Below are positions 3,718-44,227 of a stretch of 64,000 nt of DNA, in pieces. The stretch's first letter is position 1. The number at the start of each line of letters is the position of its first letter. The translations under genes were made by a program, and so were the position numbers. A model generated the notes under the pieces. It did no database searches. It had not been told where the DNA came from and saw only the letters and a list, made by a program, of their open reading frames with translations. Source of the DNA: Rebecca billardiae RCC1528 (taxonomy: Eukaryota > Protista > Haptophyta); assembly GCA_965240325.2 (NCBI GenBank), contig OZ251248.1:992001-1056000 (forward strand), read 5' to 3'.

Positions 3718-4826
3718 CAAGGGAGTCAAGGGTGCCCGCGCCCCAGTGGCGCGCTCGGCGGATGTTGGGATACACCTTTTTGCCCGCGGCCTGCGGCGGG
3801 CGGCGGCGAGGGCGTGCTCCGCTGGCGGGGCGAGCGCACGGGGCACGGCGCTGCGGGCGCGGATGTGCCCGCGAAGCCGGCGCGTGCGGACGGGCTGCTG
3901 CGGGAGAGCATCCGGCGCCCTCCTGCGCCGCGCGACTTGCGCCACGCCTCTTTCGCCTCGGCTCAGAGCAGCGCGCACGCACGTGCCGCCTCAAGGCCAG
4001 CCTTGCCGCGCCGCAGCCGGCCGCGCGCGCGCCGTGCGCGGCGCGGTCGGGAAGGAACGGGCGCTGCTGCCGGGCGAGATAGCGAAGGCATGTGCGCACG
4101 CCATGCCGCCCCGCGGCGCCTTGATGAGCGTGTCGTCGGTCTGTTTGCATGCCTCTTCGACTTGTTACCAATGGGGTGCACGACCTCGCGGTCGTGACCC
4201 TTGTCGGGACGATCATTGAGACACAGAACAGTGCCAGACGGCCACGCGGGCTACTCTTGCATGGATGTTCATCACTGCGTGGTCATGCAGAAGTGATGGC
4301 TGCGAGGCTTTCCTCGCGCTGATGCTCTTTCATCATCTTCTGCGAGCTCAGGTCTGGCTTCGTGCACGACAAGTGATCAGCACTCGTCAACAGCTGTGCG
4401 GATCCGTTCTCGTGCTCTTTCGCGGCGCCGCGGGGCGGCATGGCGTGCGCACATGCCTTCGCTATCTCGCCCGGCAGCAGCGCCCGTTCCTTCACGACCG
4501 CGCCGCGCACGGCGCGCGCGCGGCCGGCTGCGGCGCGGCAAGGCTGGCCTTGAGGCGGCACGTGCGTGCGCGCTGCTCTGAGCCGAGGCGAAAGAGGCGT
4601 GGCGCAAGTCGCGCGGCGCAGGAGGGCGCCGGATGCTCTCCCGCAGCAGCCCGTCCGCACGCGCCGGCTTCGCGGGCACATCCGCGCCCGCAGCGCCGTG
4701 CCCCGTGCGCTCGCCCCGCCAGCGGAGCACGCCCTCGCCGCCGCCCGCCGCAGGCCGCGGGCAAAAAGGTGTATCCCAACATCCGCCGAGCGCGCCACTG
4801 GGGCGCGGGCACCCTTGACTCCCTTG
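3718..4826. mobile_element. Non-autonomous foldback DNA transposon with 403-bp TIRs and 7-bp TSD (P/Galileo-like)
   Basis: 3718-4120 is a near-perfect reverse complement of 4424-4826. Termini are CAAGGGAGTCAAGGG...CCCTTGACTCCCTTG. GATCAGG is duplicated at 3711-3717 and 4827-4833. The spacer is 303 bp with no transposase. Confidence 0.92.
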
Positions 4827-6820: not shown

Positions 6821-7408
6821 CTATTCGTGCATCACCCACTGCGCTATTTCCTCCTGCCGCCTGAGCTGAGATCGTTCGTGTGTCGCGAGGATTCCGATGT
6901 CCGCTCCGGGCACGATGGGCTCGGCGAAGATCGCGTTGGCGTCGTTCACGGCCGCCACGCTGCGCAACAGCGGGTCCAGGTCCAAGCGCTCGTCGGCGCT
7001 CGCCGCTCCGCGCGACAGGTCCGGCACCCGCACGTTCGGCGGTATCAGGAGCTGTCGGTGGTGCGCGCGCGCGCAGTGCGAGAGCGTGTGCCACTCGCGA
7101 TCGAGGGTGGGCACGCGCTGCTCGAGCAGGCACAGGAAGCGCAGCGCATGCGTCACCGGCTTCACGACGTCGGCCTCGTCCCGCAGCGCCCGTGCCATGG
7201 TGGAGGATGGGGCGGCGATCTTGCACGCGCGACGTTTCATCTCGTCGCGGATGCGCATCTGGGATCGGTGATAGCGCGCTGTCGCCTCAGTCGCCGACTC
7301 GCCAAGACGCGATTCCGGCCACGGCGGCAGAACCGGCAGGTGCGTGCGGTGCGCGTCGTACGCCGCTTCGCGCTGCGCCTCCGTCGCATTGGTCACCGTC
7401 GACGCCAT
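6821..7408 (-). CDS. Hypothetical 195-aa protein carried by repeat family F
   Basis: ATG at 7408 (MASTVTNATEAQREAAYDAHRTHLP...). The N-terminal ~116 codons are colinear and free of indels in the second copy at 16975-17327. No recognised domain. Confidence 0.45.
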   Translation of the reverse strand: MASTVTNATEAQREAAYDAHRTHLPVLPPWPESRLGESATEATARYHRSQMRIRDEMKRRACKIAAPSSTMARALRDEADVVKPVTHALRFLCLLEQRVPTLDREWHTLSHCARAHHRQLLIPPNVRVPDLSRGAASADERLDLDPLLRSVAAVNDANAIFAEPIVPGADIGILATHERSQLRRQEEIAQWVMHE

Positions 7409-7855
7409 GCAGGCCGGACGTGGGCCCTCAATTGATCGCTCGCTCTGGAACACCAACGATCGTAGCAAACGGATTTGCATGCGCCCGACATTGCCAACCG
7501 GGGCACGCGACAGTCCGGTGCGCGGATTCCGGCGATCGAGTTCAGAAGGCCGCGCCAAATCTTGCGTCGCTTGCGATGGAGCTTCCCGCCCGCGAGACAC
7601 CTCGTGATGAGGGCCTTTCCGCACCGAGCCCGACGCGCGGCGGTGGATCGCGCGAGGCGGCCATCGTGCGCAGCGCCTGATGTTATGGCCGGTGCGAGCG
7701 TTCGACGTGCACGTCGGGCGAGGATCGCCCCAAGTCGCACGATCGTGTCGACGCGCCGAGCGTACCGCATCAAACGGGTCGATTTCGCCCCCGTTCGACC
7801 TGCACGCGAGACGACGAGGGCAGCAAACGCGAATCGGGCGAAAACACGTCTCGGG

Positions 7856-16561: not shown

Positions 16562-18069
16562 TGCCCTGGCGGGCGGGGGGGTCGGCGGGCCGTGCCAGTG
16601 CTGTCGCAATATTTCCCCAGCGGGTTCGCGCCTTTTATTTAGCGGTTTGACGGGCGCAGGCCATGACGAATAACAATGCGACTACACACAGATGATGGTG
16701 AGCTACCTGACTCACTGACGAATAATAACGCGACAGATGACTCTGGTGATCTCACCGACAGTGTGATTGCGCGTGTATTCGTGCACCCACTCCGCGCTAC
16801 TCGTCATCCCGGGTGCCGAGCCGTCGACTGCGCGCACGCACTGCCAACTGATTGGCGTGCGACGGGCGGCTTGCTTGTGACGCCTGACGGTGACGGTTCA
16901 ATGTCCTCGGAGCTAAACAGTGGTGGCGGAGTGTGATGTCATGTTTCATTTGTTTAGGTCGTCTGGAAGTGGAAGTGCGGTGCGCGCGCGCGCAGTGCGA
17001 GAGCGTGTGCCACTCGCGATCGAGGGTGGGCACGCGCTGCTCGAGCAGGCACAGGAAGCGCAGCGCATGTGCCACTGGCTTCACGACGTCGGCGTCGTCC
17101 CGCAGCGCTCGTGACATGGTGGAGGATGGGGCGACAATGTTGCACGCTCGGCGTTTCAGCTCGTCGCGGATGCGCCTCTGGGATCGGTCATAGCGCTGTG
17201 CGACGAGGGCCGCCGACTCGCCAAGACGCGGTTCCTTCCACGGCTGCAAACCCGGGAGGTGCGTGCGGTGCGCGTCGTACGCCGCTTTGCGCTGCCCCTC
17301 CGTCGCATTGGTCACCGTCGGCGCCATGCAGGCCGGACGTGGGCCCTCGAGCGCCGAGCGATCTTTGGCCGCGAGCTCGCGAGCGCGAAAGATGATCGCC
17401 CGCGCTCTGGAACACCACCGATCGTAGCAAACGGATTTGCATGCGCCCGACCTTGCCACCGCGGGGCACGCGACAGTCCGGTGTGTGGATTCCGGTTATG
17501 GTGTTCAGAAGGCCGCGCCAAAGCTTGCGTCGCGTGCGATGGCGCTTCCCGCTCGCGAGACGCCTCGTGATGAGGGCCGTTCCGCACCGAGCCCGACGCG
17601 CGACGGTGAATCGAGCGAGGCGGCCATCGTGCGCAGCGCTTGATGCTATGGCCGGTGCGAGCTTTCGACGTGCACGTCGGGCGAGGATCGCCCCAGGTCG
17701 CACGATCGTGTCGACGCGCCGAGCGTACCGCTCCAAACGCGTCGATTTAGCCCCCGTTCGACCTGCACGCGAGACGACGAGGGCAGCAATCGCGAATCGG
17801 GCGAAAACCCGTCTAGGGAATCCTCGCGCGATGTCCGCGCCGGCGTTGGATTCGGCGCGCGCGGCCCACGCGCTCCGCGTCATCCAGGACTCTCTTTCGG
17901 CCGAGCGTCCCCAGTGGGAGCTGCGAGGGCGCCCGGTAGTGAGCGAAGCGACCCGGCAGTGAGCGAGGCGATTTTCTTTTCTTTGCGAGGCGATTTTCTT
18001 TTTTCCTTTTCTTTTTCTTATCTTTTTCCCGGGCACTACTACAAGGGGCGGACGACCTACGGCCCGCCA
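16562..18069 (+). mobile_element. Dispersed repeat family F, copy 2
   Basis: Direct-orientation homolog of 6615-9144 that lacks the two insertions. Ends ...CTACGGCCCGCCA|TATATA. Confidence 0.75.
16797..17327 (-). pseudogene. Second copy of the family-F ORF, C-terminal part replaced
   Basis: MAPTVTNATEGQRKAAYDAHRTHLP...WHTLSHCARAH aligns to 6821-7408, then diverges below about 16975. Confidence 0.45.
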
Positions 18070-38840: not shown

Positions 38841-40182
38841 CGCCGGGCGACCGCGGAGCAGATAGCAGTCGAGTGATCCATTCAGTGATCGGCGGCGCCA
38901 CGGACTGACGACCCCGCGACCCGTGACGATCGACGGTCGTCGTCGCAGTGACTGATGCTGCCGAGTCACGACGTCGACGCACGACAGCGCATCATCATCA
39001 TCAGCATATGTACATCCGCCACAGCAGACACTGCGCGCGCTATACGCGCGCGATGTATATATATACTACGCTATATATATATACTGAGACTGGGCGGCGG
39101 ATGTCACATATATATACTGATGTATATATTCCGCCACGACTATATTCCACGACGACGCTGACTCTACCGCTACCGCGCGCACGGACGTCGCGAGCCGACG
39201 ACGATGCCAGCCTGATGAAGCCCTGCGATGATCGACGATATAGTACTATAACTACTAGTCATCCCGGACCCGGAGCTGGGCGATAAGACCCAGCTAGAGC
39301 AGTCAGCAGCTGCAGTTGCTTGTGACGACACTGACGACGGACCGGACCGCGCCGTGTAACTCTATGGCGCGCTGCCGTGACCGTCATCACGACTCGCGGC
39401 TGAAATATATTGATGATGAATATATCACGACGACTGCTATTAGTATAACTAATTATTAGTAGCAGCCGCCGGCCGCCGCCGGAGCCGCGCGGGCAGCGGC
39501 TCGGCCGATGAGTGACATCGCCGGTACCGTACTTCACTACTCGACCGCCGCGCGCCCAGCAGTAGCAGTAGCATCATCACGACTACAGTTTATTATTTGC
39601 AGTAGCATGTTTTATAGAACGTGCGTAACTCGGGCTCACGCGGTGGCAGGTTGCCGCGCCATCCTTCATCGCACGACGCTCTCCGAAGAGAGACCTGGAA
39701 ACTGGTTACAGTAGTAGTAGGCTGCTGGCCGTCGTATGGCGACTCCGCATCGGTCCGACCGGCAGACCGCAGACCGACTGACGCGGCGTGGCGGCGGCGT
39801 CGCGCAGCAGGTCGCGGATCGCGGATCGGCGGCGCATCAATCGATGATGGCCCGCGGTGCAGGGCGGAGCGCGTAGCGTGGAGCCCCGCCGGGGGCCCTC
39901 ACTACGTTGTCAAAAAGATCTTTTGATCAAAGAAAAGGGGACGGGGGACGATTTTGAGGGCTGTTGGAGGGTGAGTTTTCGACTTTTTGAGGGGGGTATG
40001 CTGTCCATCACAGCTTAAAAGGCCGCGCCCGCTGCAATTCTTGTATCTACTATGGACGGACGTGGGATCAGATACCCCGGGGGTGAAACAAGTGAGTATT
40101 CCTACCCCTCTTATATGCTGAAGTACGAGTTTGCCGAGCGACGTTTGCTGATTGTTTTGGGTCGAAAACAGCTATGAGGCCA

Positions 40183-40410
40183 GATTCTTTTGAATAGTGC
40201 TTGTTCAAATACGTTACCCGCCTGCCTCGATGGATGAACCGCCTCGTCATATTAAAAGAGATTCTTTTCAATAGCGCCTGTCCAACCAAGTTACCCGTCT
40301 GCCTCGATGGATGAACCTCCTAGTGTCATAATGAAGGGATTGTTTTGAATAGCGCTGAATAAACCAAGTTACCCGCCTGCCTCGATGGATGAACCTCCTT
40401 TGCCATAATA
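40183..40410 (+). repeat. Three tandem ~77-78-bp repeats inside element E (mirrored at 41785-42012)
   Basis: Core GTTACCCG(C/T)CTGCCTCGATGGATGAACC(G/T)CCT occurs three times, with related AT-rich linkers. Confidence 0.9.
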
Positions 40411-42347
40411 TGACCGCGTTCCGCGGTCCTTCCGTAGAACCAACGTAGTTAGGGGCCCGCGGTGCACCCTCCGTCGGCTGCTGTCTCAGTCTGGTCAACA
40501 TGGCGGGCCGATGAGGACTGTCGCCGCGGGCCCGCGCGAAGAAGTACGGACGGCGGCCGGGGCAGCGGCGCGCGCGCGCAGGGCGAGCCTGGGCCTTGAG
40601 GTGCTCGCGCTGCGCCACGCGCTCGACGACGGGCCGCTGGTCGCTCAGCCGGCGCGCCTCGTGCCGGCAGAGCGAGAGCGCGCACCACTCTGCTGGCCCC
40701 ACCCCCAGCGGCCCCAGCCTGAGCTCACGGCGCTGCGCAGCCGCGCACCGAGAGGCGAGACCGACTACCGAGCGGAGCTCGGGGTGGAACGAGGCGAGCG
40801 GCGGGTCGCGCCTGCCGGCCGCGCGTGCGCGCCTGCTCCACCGCGCCACCGTGCTCGCCCGCCGCCTCCTCCGCCGCGTCGGCCTCGAAGCCACGGCGGC
40901 GGCCAGCCAGCCTCCGACCGAGGCGCGGAGCCCGTGCGTGCTCACTCACCCGGCGCGGTGGCGCCCTCGAGTCGACGGCCGTCTACTCCACAGCTGGCTG
41001 CTCGAGCTGCTGCACGGGGCGTCGCGACGAGGGCGCCGCGCGCGCCCAGCGCGTCCGTCGCCGCGTCGCGCAGCGCGTCGAGCTCGGCGCCGCGCTTCGC
41101 CAGCTCGGCGCCCAGCAGCGCCTCCGTGCGCACTCGTGCTCATTCGATTGTCGTCATCGCGCTCGTCGGCTCCGTGGCGAGCCCGCGGGGCGGACGAGCG
41201 GACTACTGCGCGCCGCAGCAGGAGCAGCGCGCGGCGCGCAGCGCTCCGCGCGCAGCAGGGCCGTCTCCTCATCCACCGAGTGCACGGCCTGCGCGGCGGC
41301 GACGGCGGCGCGCGCCCGGCCGCGGGGGGACGCAAGCGCTGCGGGCCGAGATGAGTCCGGCCGCCGAGCCGCGGTGGCGGCGTCGGCGTGCGCGCCGGGC
41401 GAGGTGAGCGAGCTCACGCGGCCCGGGCTCAGCACGCCCGTGCACAGCGCCGGCCGCGGTGGCGAGCGCGCACCGCTCGGCCGCGGTGGCAACCGGCTGA
41501 GCGGTTGATGTTTCGGATTGTTTGAAGCCGCGAGGTCAGCGACGTCTCCGATGACTCGGCCATGATTGTGGTCCTCCTTCGCCCACGGGTGCTTTGTCGA
41601 CCATCCGCTGGAGGCGCGCCAACGTCGGTACGGACAGCGCCTGCTTGAGCGTCGTGATGTGCATCAGCTCGAGCCGGCCGAAGATGGGCCCGCCGACGGC
41701 GATGATCATGATGTGCGCGCTTGCCGCTTGGGCACCCGTCCTCGTCGCGAGACGCTGGCGGGCGGGTAACCCGTTTTTCTTTCATATTATGGCAAAGGAG
41801 GTTCATCCATCGAGGCAGGCGGGTAACTTGGTTTATTCAGCGCTATTCAAAACAATCCCTTCATTATGACACTAGGAGGTTCATCCATCGAGGCAGACGG
41901 GTAACTTGGTTGGACAGGCGCTATTGAAAAGAATCTCTTTTAATATGACGAGGCGGTTCATCCATCGAGGCAGGCGGGTAACGTATTTGAACAAGCACTA
42001 TTCAAAAGAATCTGGCCTCATAGCTGTTTTCGACCCAAAACAATCAGCAAACGTCGCTCGGCAAACTCGTACTTCAGCATACAAGAGGGGTAGGAATACT
42101 CACTTGTTTCACCCCCGGGGTATCTGATCCCACGTCCGTCCATAGTAGATACAAGAATTGCAGCGGGCGCGGCCTTTCAAGCTGTGATGGACAGCATACC
42201 CCCCTCAAAAAGTCGAAAACTCACCCTCCAACAGCCCTCAAAATCGTCCCCCGTCCCCTTTTCTTTGATCAAAAGATCTTTTTGACAACGTAGTGAGGGC
42301 CCCCGGCGGGGCTCCACGCTACGCGCTCCGCCCTGCACCGCGGGCCA
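40411..42347 (-). mobile_element. Element E, inner intact copy (1937 bp), inserted inverted into the outer copy
   Basis: Junctions are CCATAATA|TGACCGCG and CGCGGGCCA|TGAAAG. The intact empty site CTTTCA^TATTATGG is visible inside this copy at 41784/41785. Confidence 0.88.
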
Positions 42348-43720
42348 TGAAAGAAAAACGGGTTACCCGCCCGCCAGCTGTCTCGCGACGAGGACGGGTG
42401 CCCAAGCGGCAAGCGCGCACATCATGATCATCGCCGTCGGCGGGCCCATCTTCGGCCGGCTCGAGCTGATGCACATCACGACGCTCAAGCAGGCGCTGTC
42501 CGTACCGACGTTGGCGCGCCTCCAGCGGATGGTCGACAAAGCACCCGTGGGCGAAGGAGGACCACAATCATGGCCGAGTCATCGGAGACGTCGCTGACCT
42601 CGCGGCTTCAAACAATCCGAAACATCAACCGCTCAGCCGGTTGCCACCGCGGCCGAGCGGTGCGCGCTCGCCACCGCGGCCGGCGCTGTGCACGGGCGTG
42701 CTGAGCCCGGGCCGCGTGAGCTCGCCCACCTCGCCCGGCGCGCACGCCGACGCCGCCACCGCGGCTCGGCGGCCGGACTCATCTCGGCCCGCAGCGCTTG
42801 CGTCCCCCCGCGGCCGGGCGCGCGCCGCCGTCGCCGCCGCGCAGGCCGTGCACTCGGTGGATGAGGAGACGGCCCTGCTGCGCGCGGAGCGCTGCGCGCC
42901 GCGCGCTGCTCCTGCTGCGGCGCGCAGTAGTCCGCTCGTCCGCCCCGCGGGCTCGCCACGGAGCCGACGAGCGCGATGACGACAATCGAATGAGCACGAG
43001 TGCGCACGGAGGCGCTGGGCGCCGACGGCAGTGGCGAAGCGCGGCGCCGAGCTCGACGCGCTGCGCGACGCGGCGACGGACGCGCTGGGCGCGCGCGGCG
43101 CCCTCGTCGCGACGCCCCGTGCAGCAGCTCGAGCAGCCAGCTGTGGAGTAGACGGCCGTCGACTCGAGGGCGCCACCGCGCCGGGTGAGTGAGCACGCAC
43201 GGGCTCCGCCTCGGTCGGAGGCTGGCTGGCCGCCGCCGTGGCTTCGAGGCCGACGCGGCGGAGGAGGCGGCGGGCGAGCACGGTGGCGCGGTGGAGCAGG
43301 CGCGCACGCGCGGCCGGCAGGCGCGACCCGCCGCTCGCCTCGTTCCACCCCGAGCTCCGCTCGGTAGTCGGTCTCGCCTCTCGGTGCGCGGCTGCGCAGC
43401 GCCGTGAGCTCAGGCTGGGGCCGCTGGGGGTGGGGCCAGCAGAGTGGTGCGCGCTCTCGCTCTGCCGGCACGAGGCGCGCCGGCTGAGCGACCAGCGGCC
43501 CGTCGTCGAGCGCGTGGCGCAGCGCGAGCACCTCAAGGCCCAGGCTCGCCCTGCGCGCGCGCGCCGCTGCCCCGGCCGCCGTCCGTACTTCTTCGCGCGG
43601 GCCCGCGGCGACAGTCCTCATCGGCCCGCCATGTTGACCAGACTGAGACAGCAGCCGACGGAGGGTGCACCGCGGGCCCCTAACTACGTTGGTTCTACGG
43701 AAGGACCGCGGAACGCGGTC

Positions 43721-43884
<164 letters not shown>

Positions 43885-44227
43885 TACGACGACTGCGCTA
43901 TATATGTATCGATCGAGACGATCCGGACGCGATGATGACGACCGGAAGTCAGCCGGCCGCGCGGCTCACATGGCGGCGACCGGCGTATATATATCAAATA
44001 TAATATCTGATGAATAAGCACGCAGCTAGCATCACTGCGCTACTGTGCCATGGAGCAGTACGGCATACACCGTTATGCTAGCACGGGTACCGCGGCGCAT
44101 GGCAGCACTCGGCATCGATGCGGGCCGCGAGTGACGGTCCGGTCAGGCCGCGGCCCGGCCGCGCAGCAGTAGATCAGACTCCGTCGTAGGCGTACGCGTC
44201 ATATTGGCGCGTCACCATCAGCCCGAC

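Follow-up and report, generated by a model that had tools for sequence, protein, structure and literature searches.

A self-nested, probable non-autonomous Helitron2-type transposon of Rebecca billardiae and its asymmetric T-N-A^T-A target

A 64,000-nucleotide stretch of the genome of the haptophyte Rebecca billardiae RCC1528 (assembly GCA_965240325.2, contig OZ251248.1, positions 992,001 to 1,056,000, forward strand; hereafter the window) contains a 1937-bp repeat split by a second, inverted copy of itself (39848-43721). We consider this unit likely to be a non-autonomous rolling-circle transposon of the Helitron2 (HLE2) type, one member of a family of about 1,100 copies that share their ends and carry varied non-coding cargo. 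The family is best filed as a new, abundant and recently active one of the known Helitron2/HLE2 kind, with a TNAT-type target. Coordinates below are positions in the window unless they are prefixed by a contig (C1, C3, C39 and so on).

One copy of the element interrupts another

The A-B-A'-B' pattern of the region, first described in a model-made annotation of the window (hereafter the first-pass annotation), is one copy of the element inserted at TCA^TA inside another. Comparison of the copies resolved the outer element into a left part of 563 bp (39848-40410, forward strand; element positions 1-563), which ends at the insertion point, and a right part of 1374 bp (42348-43721, forward strand; element positions 564-1937), summing to 1937 bp. 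Between them lies the inner element, a complete 1937-bp copy on the reverse strand (40411-42347) that gave a 100% self-match in the genome. The decomposition put forward in the first-pass annotation is exact to the base, and the few differences it reported between the copies amount to 3 single-nucleotide substitutions and 5 insertions or deletions of 1-3 bp. These differences mark the outer and inner elements as two distinct young copies, so the assembler did not create one by duplicating the other.

The filled junctions read ..ttgccataata^TGACCGCG... on the left and ...GGGCCA^tgaaagaaaaac.. on the right. The unbroken target is kept within the inner copy as ..ttgccataata^tgaaagaaaaac.., and alignment of the copies places the break point of the outer element between A 41784 and T 41785 of the forward strand (tttcA^Tatta, 41780-41789). 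This internal empty site had been proposed to reveal the insertion chemistry directly. The site is indeed preserved, but taken alone it is ambiguous over four nucleotides (TCAT), since the 5' flank there is TCA, identical to the final three bases of the element; by itself it is also compatible with a 3-4-bp duplication, and the flanks of the wider family were needed to read the chemistry.

Repeats of about 2 kb at 99% identity are able to mislead assemblers, and the pattern might then reflect misassembly, or recombination between copies, with no insertion at all. We regard this as highly improbable. The break falls exactly at both element termini and at the consensus target TCA^TA, 8 positions differ between the copies, and the arrangement is no simple fold-back; moreover, an assembly of 41 contigs for 72 Mb fits long reads able to span 3.9 kb.

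A large and young family with common ends

A genome-wide search for both ends, proposed in the first-pass annotation, was run on the 72-Mb, 41-contig, very GC-rich assembly. It returned 1,131 matches to the left end (23-mer pattern, at most 2 mismatches) and 1,048 to the right end (19-mer pattern, at most 1 mismatch), and the reversed control patterns of both ends gave 0. Among full-length copies of the 1937-bp type, at least 14 share 94-100% identity and two further ones stand at 89%; other members of the family are 1.2 to about 6 kb long. The members resemble one another only in their outermost sequence, about 140 bp on the left and 25-80 bp on the right; their interiors are unrelated and non-coding. 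The termini read TGGCCCGCGG...GGTCA, with the right end written ...GGACCGCGGAACGCGGTCA. No Pfam domain was found in any open reading frame of the 1937-bp element, and the 23-nt left end of the family had no exact match in a metagenome contig collection. Near-identical copies devoid of coding content support the original description of a recently active, non-autonomous element.

The element inserts at T-N-A^T-A without target duplication

We aligned the flanks of independent copies at 36 left and 39 right junctions. In surrounding DNA with 16% A and 16% T, position -3 was T in all 36 left flanks and position -1 was A in 34 of them. Past the right end, T was invariant at +1 (39/39), A was found at +2 in 31 of 39 flanks and T at +3 in 27 of 39. 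The target, T-N-A^T-A, is asymmetric and non-palindromic, and it is not duplicated. The triplet preceding the element varied (TTA 17, TCA 8, TAA 7, TGA 2, other 2) while the element always ended in TCA, which excludes a 3- or 4-bp duplication. A 3-bp TNA duplication of the PIF/Harbinger-like kind is ruled out on the same ground, and a TA duplication of the Tc1/mariner-like kind by the left flanks, only 17 of 36 of which end in TA. With no variable target duplications in this sample, the flanks and the internal empty site together bear out the initial claim of insertion between A and T without duplication.

All copies share one orientation relative to T-N-A^T-A. Because the target is non-palindromic and every copy is oriented alike, insertion is orientation-specific. 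Staggered-cut transposases usually insert without such specificity. Orientation-specific insertion is a behaviour of transposons mobilised by Rep (PMC10288648).

The junction can be shifted by one base either way, and the reading given above has a formal equivalent in GG..TC ends combined with a strict AT duplication of 2 bp. This equivalence, already pointed out in the first-pass annotation, stands: with the phase ambiguous, an AT duplication, as would be expected of a cut-and-paste DNA transposon with GG...TC ends, accounts just as well for the constant A ahead of the element and the constant T behind it. We nevertheless consider such a transposon very unlikely, as the family departs in several respects from a terminal inverted repeat (DDE) transposon with a 2-bp duplication. 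Its outermost bases do not form an inverted repeat. T occupies -3 throughout and +3 is mostly T rather than A, which makes the target asymmetric, and all copies face one way. The two copies with G instead of A at -1 disagree with an AT duplication, their -1 and terminal bases being mismatched. Finally, about 1,100 near-identical copies are better explained by copy-and-paste.

The data also allow the first T to be counted as flank, in which case the family reads TNAT^A at 31 of 39 junctions or TNAT^T at 6 of 39. In Fusarium, the FoHeli1 and FoHeli2 elements insert after TNAT and before T; in related Chaetomium elements the base that follows TNAT is A (PMC5148889). The A^T target is hence unusual, yet with precedent among Helitron2-like elements.

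The ends follow the Helitron2 layout

The element starts with T, followed from element position 2 by a 13-nt repeat, GGCCCGCGGTGCA, which in the outer copy lies 1 nt from the end (39849-39861, forward strand). This asymmetric terminal repeat pairs with bases some 40-50 nt downstream to form a predicted left hairpin in both subfamilies of the element (39849-39897 in the outer copy); in the second subfamily the partner arm has another sequence, with pairing retained. The inverse repeat, TGCACCGCGGGCC, is subterminal and ends 43 nt from the 3' end (43666-43678, forward strand). After a 25-nt spacer comes a 3' hairpin, GACCGCG-GAA-CGCGGTC (43704-43720, with the final A at 43721, forward strand), which has a 7-bp stem and a GAA loop and ends 1 nt before the terminus. 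Its fold is supported by a z-score of -3.6, and it recurs in about 1,050 genomic copies at no more than 1 mismatch; because it is invariant among them, it yields no covariation. The inner copy has the same features on the reverse strand, with the 5' terminal inverted repeat at 42334-42346, the 3' subterminal inverted repeat at 40454-40466 and the terminal hairpin with its final A at 40411-40428. Both the inverted recurrence of the 5'-terminal repeat near the 3' end and the terminal hairpin had been recognised in the first-pass annotation.

That annotation had also noticed a subterminal direct repeat, GGGCCC..ACTACGTTG, near both ends, and we locate one unit at positions 45-61 and the other about 28-46 nt from the 3' end. 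Its origin is simple: the 5' repeat can pair either with the 3' arm of the left hairpin or with the 3' inverted repeat, and these two partners make up the direct repeat. This arrangement fits the proposal of Bao and Jurka that, at termination, the left hairpin and 5'-3' pairing are in competition (PMC3627910).

Helitron2, as described by Bao and Jurka, has a 5' T and asymmetric terminal inverted repeats of 8-15 nt, the 5' one lying 0-2 nt from the end and forming a left hairpin with downstream bases, and the 3' one being subterminal, 20-30 nt from the end and upstream of a 3' hairpin (PMC3627910). In the HELIANO definition, HLE2 has the same layout with repeats of 12-16 nt and a stem-loop after the right repeat (PMC11417382). 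Our family shares with the non-autonomous elements of this type the 5' T, the asymmetric 5' repeat that also forms the left hairpin, and the subterminal 3' repeat followed by the terminal hairpin; the absence of target duplication, orientation-specific insertion, high copy number and common ends with variable cargo are shared as well (PMC3627910; PMC11417382). It differs in the position of the 3' repeat, whose distance of 43 nt from the end is slightly beyond the 20-30 nt of PMC3627910, in the 25-nt spacer and in a hairpin only 1 nt from the terminus. Thus the suggestion that the ends are asymmetric and of the rolling-circle (HUH) type is supported. The further suggestion of a possibly undescribed HUH-type group is not, since the ends match the published Helitron2/HLE2 definition (PMC3627910; PMC11417382) and the target has a fungal precedent (PMC5148889).

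Other known systems resemble the family less closely. FoHeli1 and FoHeli2 of Fusarium oxysporum and the Helitrons of Chaetomium globosum (PMC5148889) share Helitron2-like ends with asymmetric inverted repeats, and their TNAT^T and TNAT^A targets equal the T-N-A^T-A/T of our family after a one-base shift of the junction. However, the termini are unrelated (TCAG...ATTTT in FoHeli, TGGCCC...GGTCA here), and the FoHeli elements reside in fungi and have known RepHel genes. Canonical Helitrons (Helitron1/HLE1) share insertion at A/T without duplication and a 3' hairpin. Unlike them, the family has neither a 5' TC nor a 3' CTRR and ends in TGG...GGTCA, places its hairpin 1 nt from the end instead of 10-12 nt, and possesses terminal inverted repeats and a left hairpin. 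Replitrons are likewise HUH-type copy-and-paste elements of algae with repeats near their ends, and putative ones have been reported in haptophytes (PMC10288648). Their repeats are short direct repeats at the termini or a few nt from them, and their partner is a Y1 Rep that lacks a helicase, whereas the termini of our family differ and its direct repeat is subterminal; we rejected the latter as a Replitron-like feature, as it is explained by the hairpin and inverted-repeat design.

Three RepHel-type families are present in the genome

As the first-pass annotation had stated, the mobilising enzyme is not encoded in the window: no gene for a RepHel transposase, which combines an HUH nuclease with a Pif1-like helicase, was found there. 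A profile search for long coding copies, also proposed there, was run on the whole genome with PF14214, PF05970, PF02902, PF13604 and PF20209. It brought to light three element families of the RepHel type, of which two include intact young copies; none has the termini of the studied family. The genome search with PF20209 gave no match, even at a locus that matches this profile in hmmscan, and is hence uninformative. The Pif1-like matches on C22 and C14 have no relation to RepHel, and no family ends lie near them. We also enumerated pairs of family ends on contig 1 and about 2 Mb of contig 3. Eight pairs with ends more than 3 kb apart on contig 1 were read, and all proved to be non-coding relatives that share termini only.

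The first RepHel-type family (a) is a 12.4-kb element with a 3,640-aa open frame matching Helitron_like_N (PF14214) and PIF1 (PF05970), present in at least 4 copies that are 99-100% identical over the parts compared. One copy (C33:777917-790353, reverse strand) sits in a 1.56-kb Helitron2-type repeat. The empty site, ..gtacagttta^ctaag.., can be read in two copies of this repeat that are uninterrupted, and it shows no duplication. The right end consists of a hairpin, ATCGA-AAAA-TCGAT, followed by CA^TA, much like the right end of the studied family. The left end is (T/G)ACGCACAAC with variable flanks, the preceding base being G in five copies and T in two. In a 4.4-kb member of the studied family, a segment of about 840 bp (C1:3026453-3027291, equivalent to L035:1352-2190) derives from the 3' subterminal region of family (a), to which it is 92% identical; the shared region includes the tandem repeats of (a), and the match stops 17 bp before its end. 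The two families have thus exchanged sequence, which is no proof of mobilisation.

The second family (b) encodes a RepHel that is 38% identical to that of (a) and has a 2,606-aa open frame, with a single full copy on C39 (C39:333876-355124). Its left end, (T/G)ACAAATTGTCC, was read from two truncated copies (left ends at C22:151845, forward strand, and C35:143984, reverse strand). Three elements interrupt the full copy: a 1.29-kb high-copy repeat, a palindromic element of 3.05 kb whose inverted arms measure 893 bp, and a 6-kb element bounded by direct repeats of 794 bp. At C39:355124, on the same strand as the RepHel gene and 8.8 kb past its stop, lies a right end of the studied family. No family left end is found between them, where other repeats form a mosaic. 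The probability of a right end in this position by chance is roughly 0.07, and near a related left end on contig 1 no right end of the studied family was found.

The third family (c) comprises four copies with open frames of 2,736-2,873 aa (C16:811918-820125, reverse strand, 2,736 aa; C1:3190254; C10:224826; C15:1135469), which are 99-100% identical in a 351-aa helicase piece; a genome search with this piece returned only these four. The protein matches Ulp1 (weakly), DUF6570 (below the Pfam cut-off) and a superfamily 1 (SF1) helicase. DUF6570 is a marker of HLE2 (PMC11417382). In a protein atlas, the central part lies beside clusters of DUF6570 and Helitron_like_N (score 0.95), a lead and no proof. 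A Rep domain was not detected in it by Pfam, BLAST or a small profile, and a Protein Data Bank sequence search gave no match to the protein. Both ends are built on the Helitron2 design, like those of the studied family: the left end is aaa^TGGCGGGCCGTAGGTCCGCC... (A^TGGCGGGCCGT..., thus A^TGGC...), and on the right side are the inverse repeat ACGGCCCGCC, a hairpin and the end ...GCTGAGTTTT (...GAGTTTT). Family (c) seems to supply the autonomous partner for the 1.56-kb repeat family and for derivatives with Ulp1 remnants. Within the window, two reverse-strand fragments (6845-7435 and 16977-17384) have 75-81% protein identity to its N-terminal Ulp1-like part and are probably decayed derivatives of this family.

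Assessment of the assignment and a probable mechanism

Besides the phase ambiguity of the junctions, several findings weigh against a Helitron2-type assignment. The T^T target usual for HLE2 is reached in no phase, the allowed ones giving A^T, N^A or T^A/T; the family target is A^T (T-N-A^T-A). At the left end, the hairpin of the window's subfamily folds no better than shuffled GC-rich sequence (z -0.6); the fold reaches significance in the second subfamily alone (z -3.3). At the right end, the inverted repeat stands 25 nt ahead of the hairpin and not directly before it, and a few copies miss it. No autonomous copy with the family termini was found by the profile searches or among the end pairs read. 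The left ends of the three RepHel-type families, (T/G)ACGCAC..., (T/G)ACAAATTG... and TGGCGGGCC..., do not match that of the studied family, and their right ends, where readable, are also unlike its own.

Nor do tandem arrangements add support. The exact head-to-tail junction ...GGTCA^TGGCCC... occurs 12 times in the genome. Such junctions are explicable by insertion, because an existing right end and its flank form TCA^TA, the family's own target. From the density of TNATA sites in the window (about 1.7 per kb), target choice alone would produce roughly a handful to a dozen. The observed count is about the expectation and hence provides no evidence for rolling-circle read-through.

Might the family instead depend for its movement on an enzyme, HUH-type or other, that belongs to none of the known RepHel families, and form a new group that resembles Helitron2 only in its ends? 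The A^T target and the mismatch with the termini of all three RepHel-type families speak for this, as does the outcome of the whole-genome searches with PF14214, PF05970, PF13604 and PF02902, which gave no fourth multi-copy helicase or Rep candidate. We think it unlikely all the same. Every structural feature tested fits Helitron2/HLE2, the target has its precedent among fungal Helitron2 elements (PMC5148889), and it is common for a family to have no autonomous partner in its own genome (PMC11417382). Moreover, end pairs were enumerated on contig 1 and part of contig 3 only, and the divergent Ulp1/DUF6570 RepHel of family (c) escaped the Rep and Pif1 profile searches, so another could too. It is likewise improbable that the roughly 1,100 copies owe their movement to none of the recognisable RepHel transposases of the genome but to an enzyme that escaped recognition, or to a RepHel lineage that follows a new target rule, T-N-A^T-A, and recognises nothing but the hairpin-TCA right end. 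If this were true, the family would be a distinct branch of the HUH-type eukaryotic transposons.

Under the Helitron2-type assignment that we favour, a RepHel transposase acting in trans would nick one strand at A^TGG. The strand would be peeled off 5' to 3' until the terminal hairpin stops the process, leaving the end ...GGTCA. The single strand, probably by way of a circle joined at GGTCA^TGGCCC, would then be pasted into a single-stranded T-N-A^T-A in one fixed orientation and without target duplication. In the window, one copy would have entered TCA^TA within another in this manner, giving rise to A-B-A'-B'.

Sequence context and other repeats

Three tandem repeats of 77-78 nt lie in the outer element directly before the insertion point (40182-40402, forward strand) and are mirrored in the inner copy at 41796-42016. 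The 3' end of the outer copy adjoins an AT-rich flank (43722-43886) with a (TA)n microsatellite of about 140 bp that starts directly after 43721, where the first-pass annotation had also placed it. Because (TA)n contains no T-N-A-T-A target, copies are found at the edges of such tracts and not inside them.

A left end of the family without a right end within reach was observed at C3:1505059 (forward strand). At a distance of 6.5 kb, the other strand carries an open frame of 4,488 aa with a weak P-loop (AAA_30) match (C3:1511555-1511746, reverse strand); this proximity is probably a coincidence.

Two further high-copy repeats were encountered. A fold-back element of about 1.0-1.1 kb with inverted arms of 330-400 bp is found in the window at 602-1529 and 3793-4749 and also at L063:1087-2187, with more than 40 genomic copies at 90-100% identity. 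On contig 16 (C16:810030-810551), a 520-bp repeat resembling a miniature inverted-repeat transposable element has terminal inverted repeats of about 29 bp and more than 40 copies at 94-99% identity.

Significance

The self-nested copy is a natural before-and-after record of one insertion. Combined with the flanks, about 75 in number, this record establishes where the element ends, that no duplication is made and that the target of this very abundant, young family of the Helitron2 type is the asymmetric T-N-A^T-A. The known working of Helitron2-type elements is not changed by it. The family is a second, non-fungal case of a TNAT-type target among HLE2 elements, and its description is useful for genome annotation, as such elements occupy AT-rich gaps between genes and adjoin (TA)n tracts.

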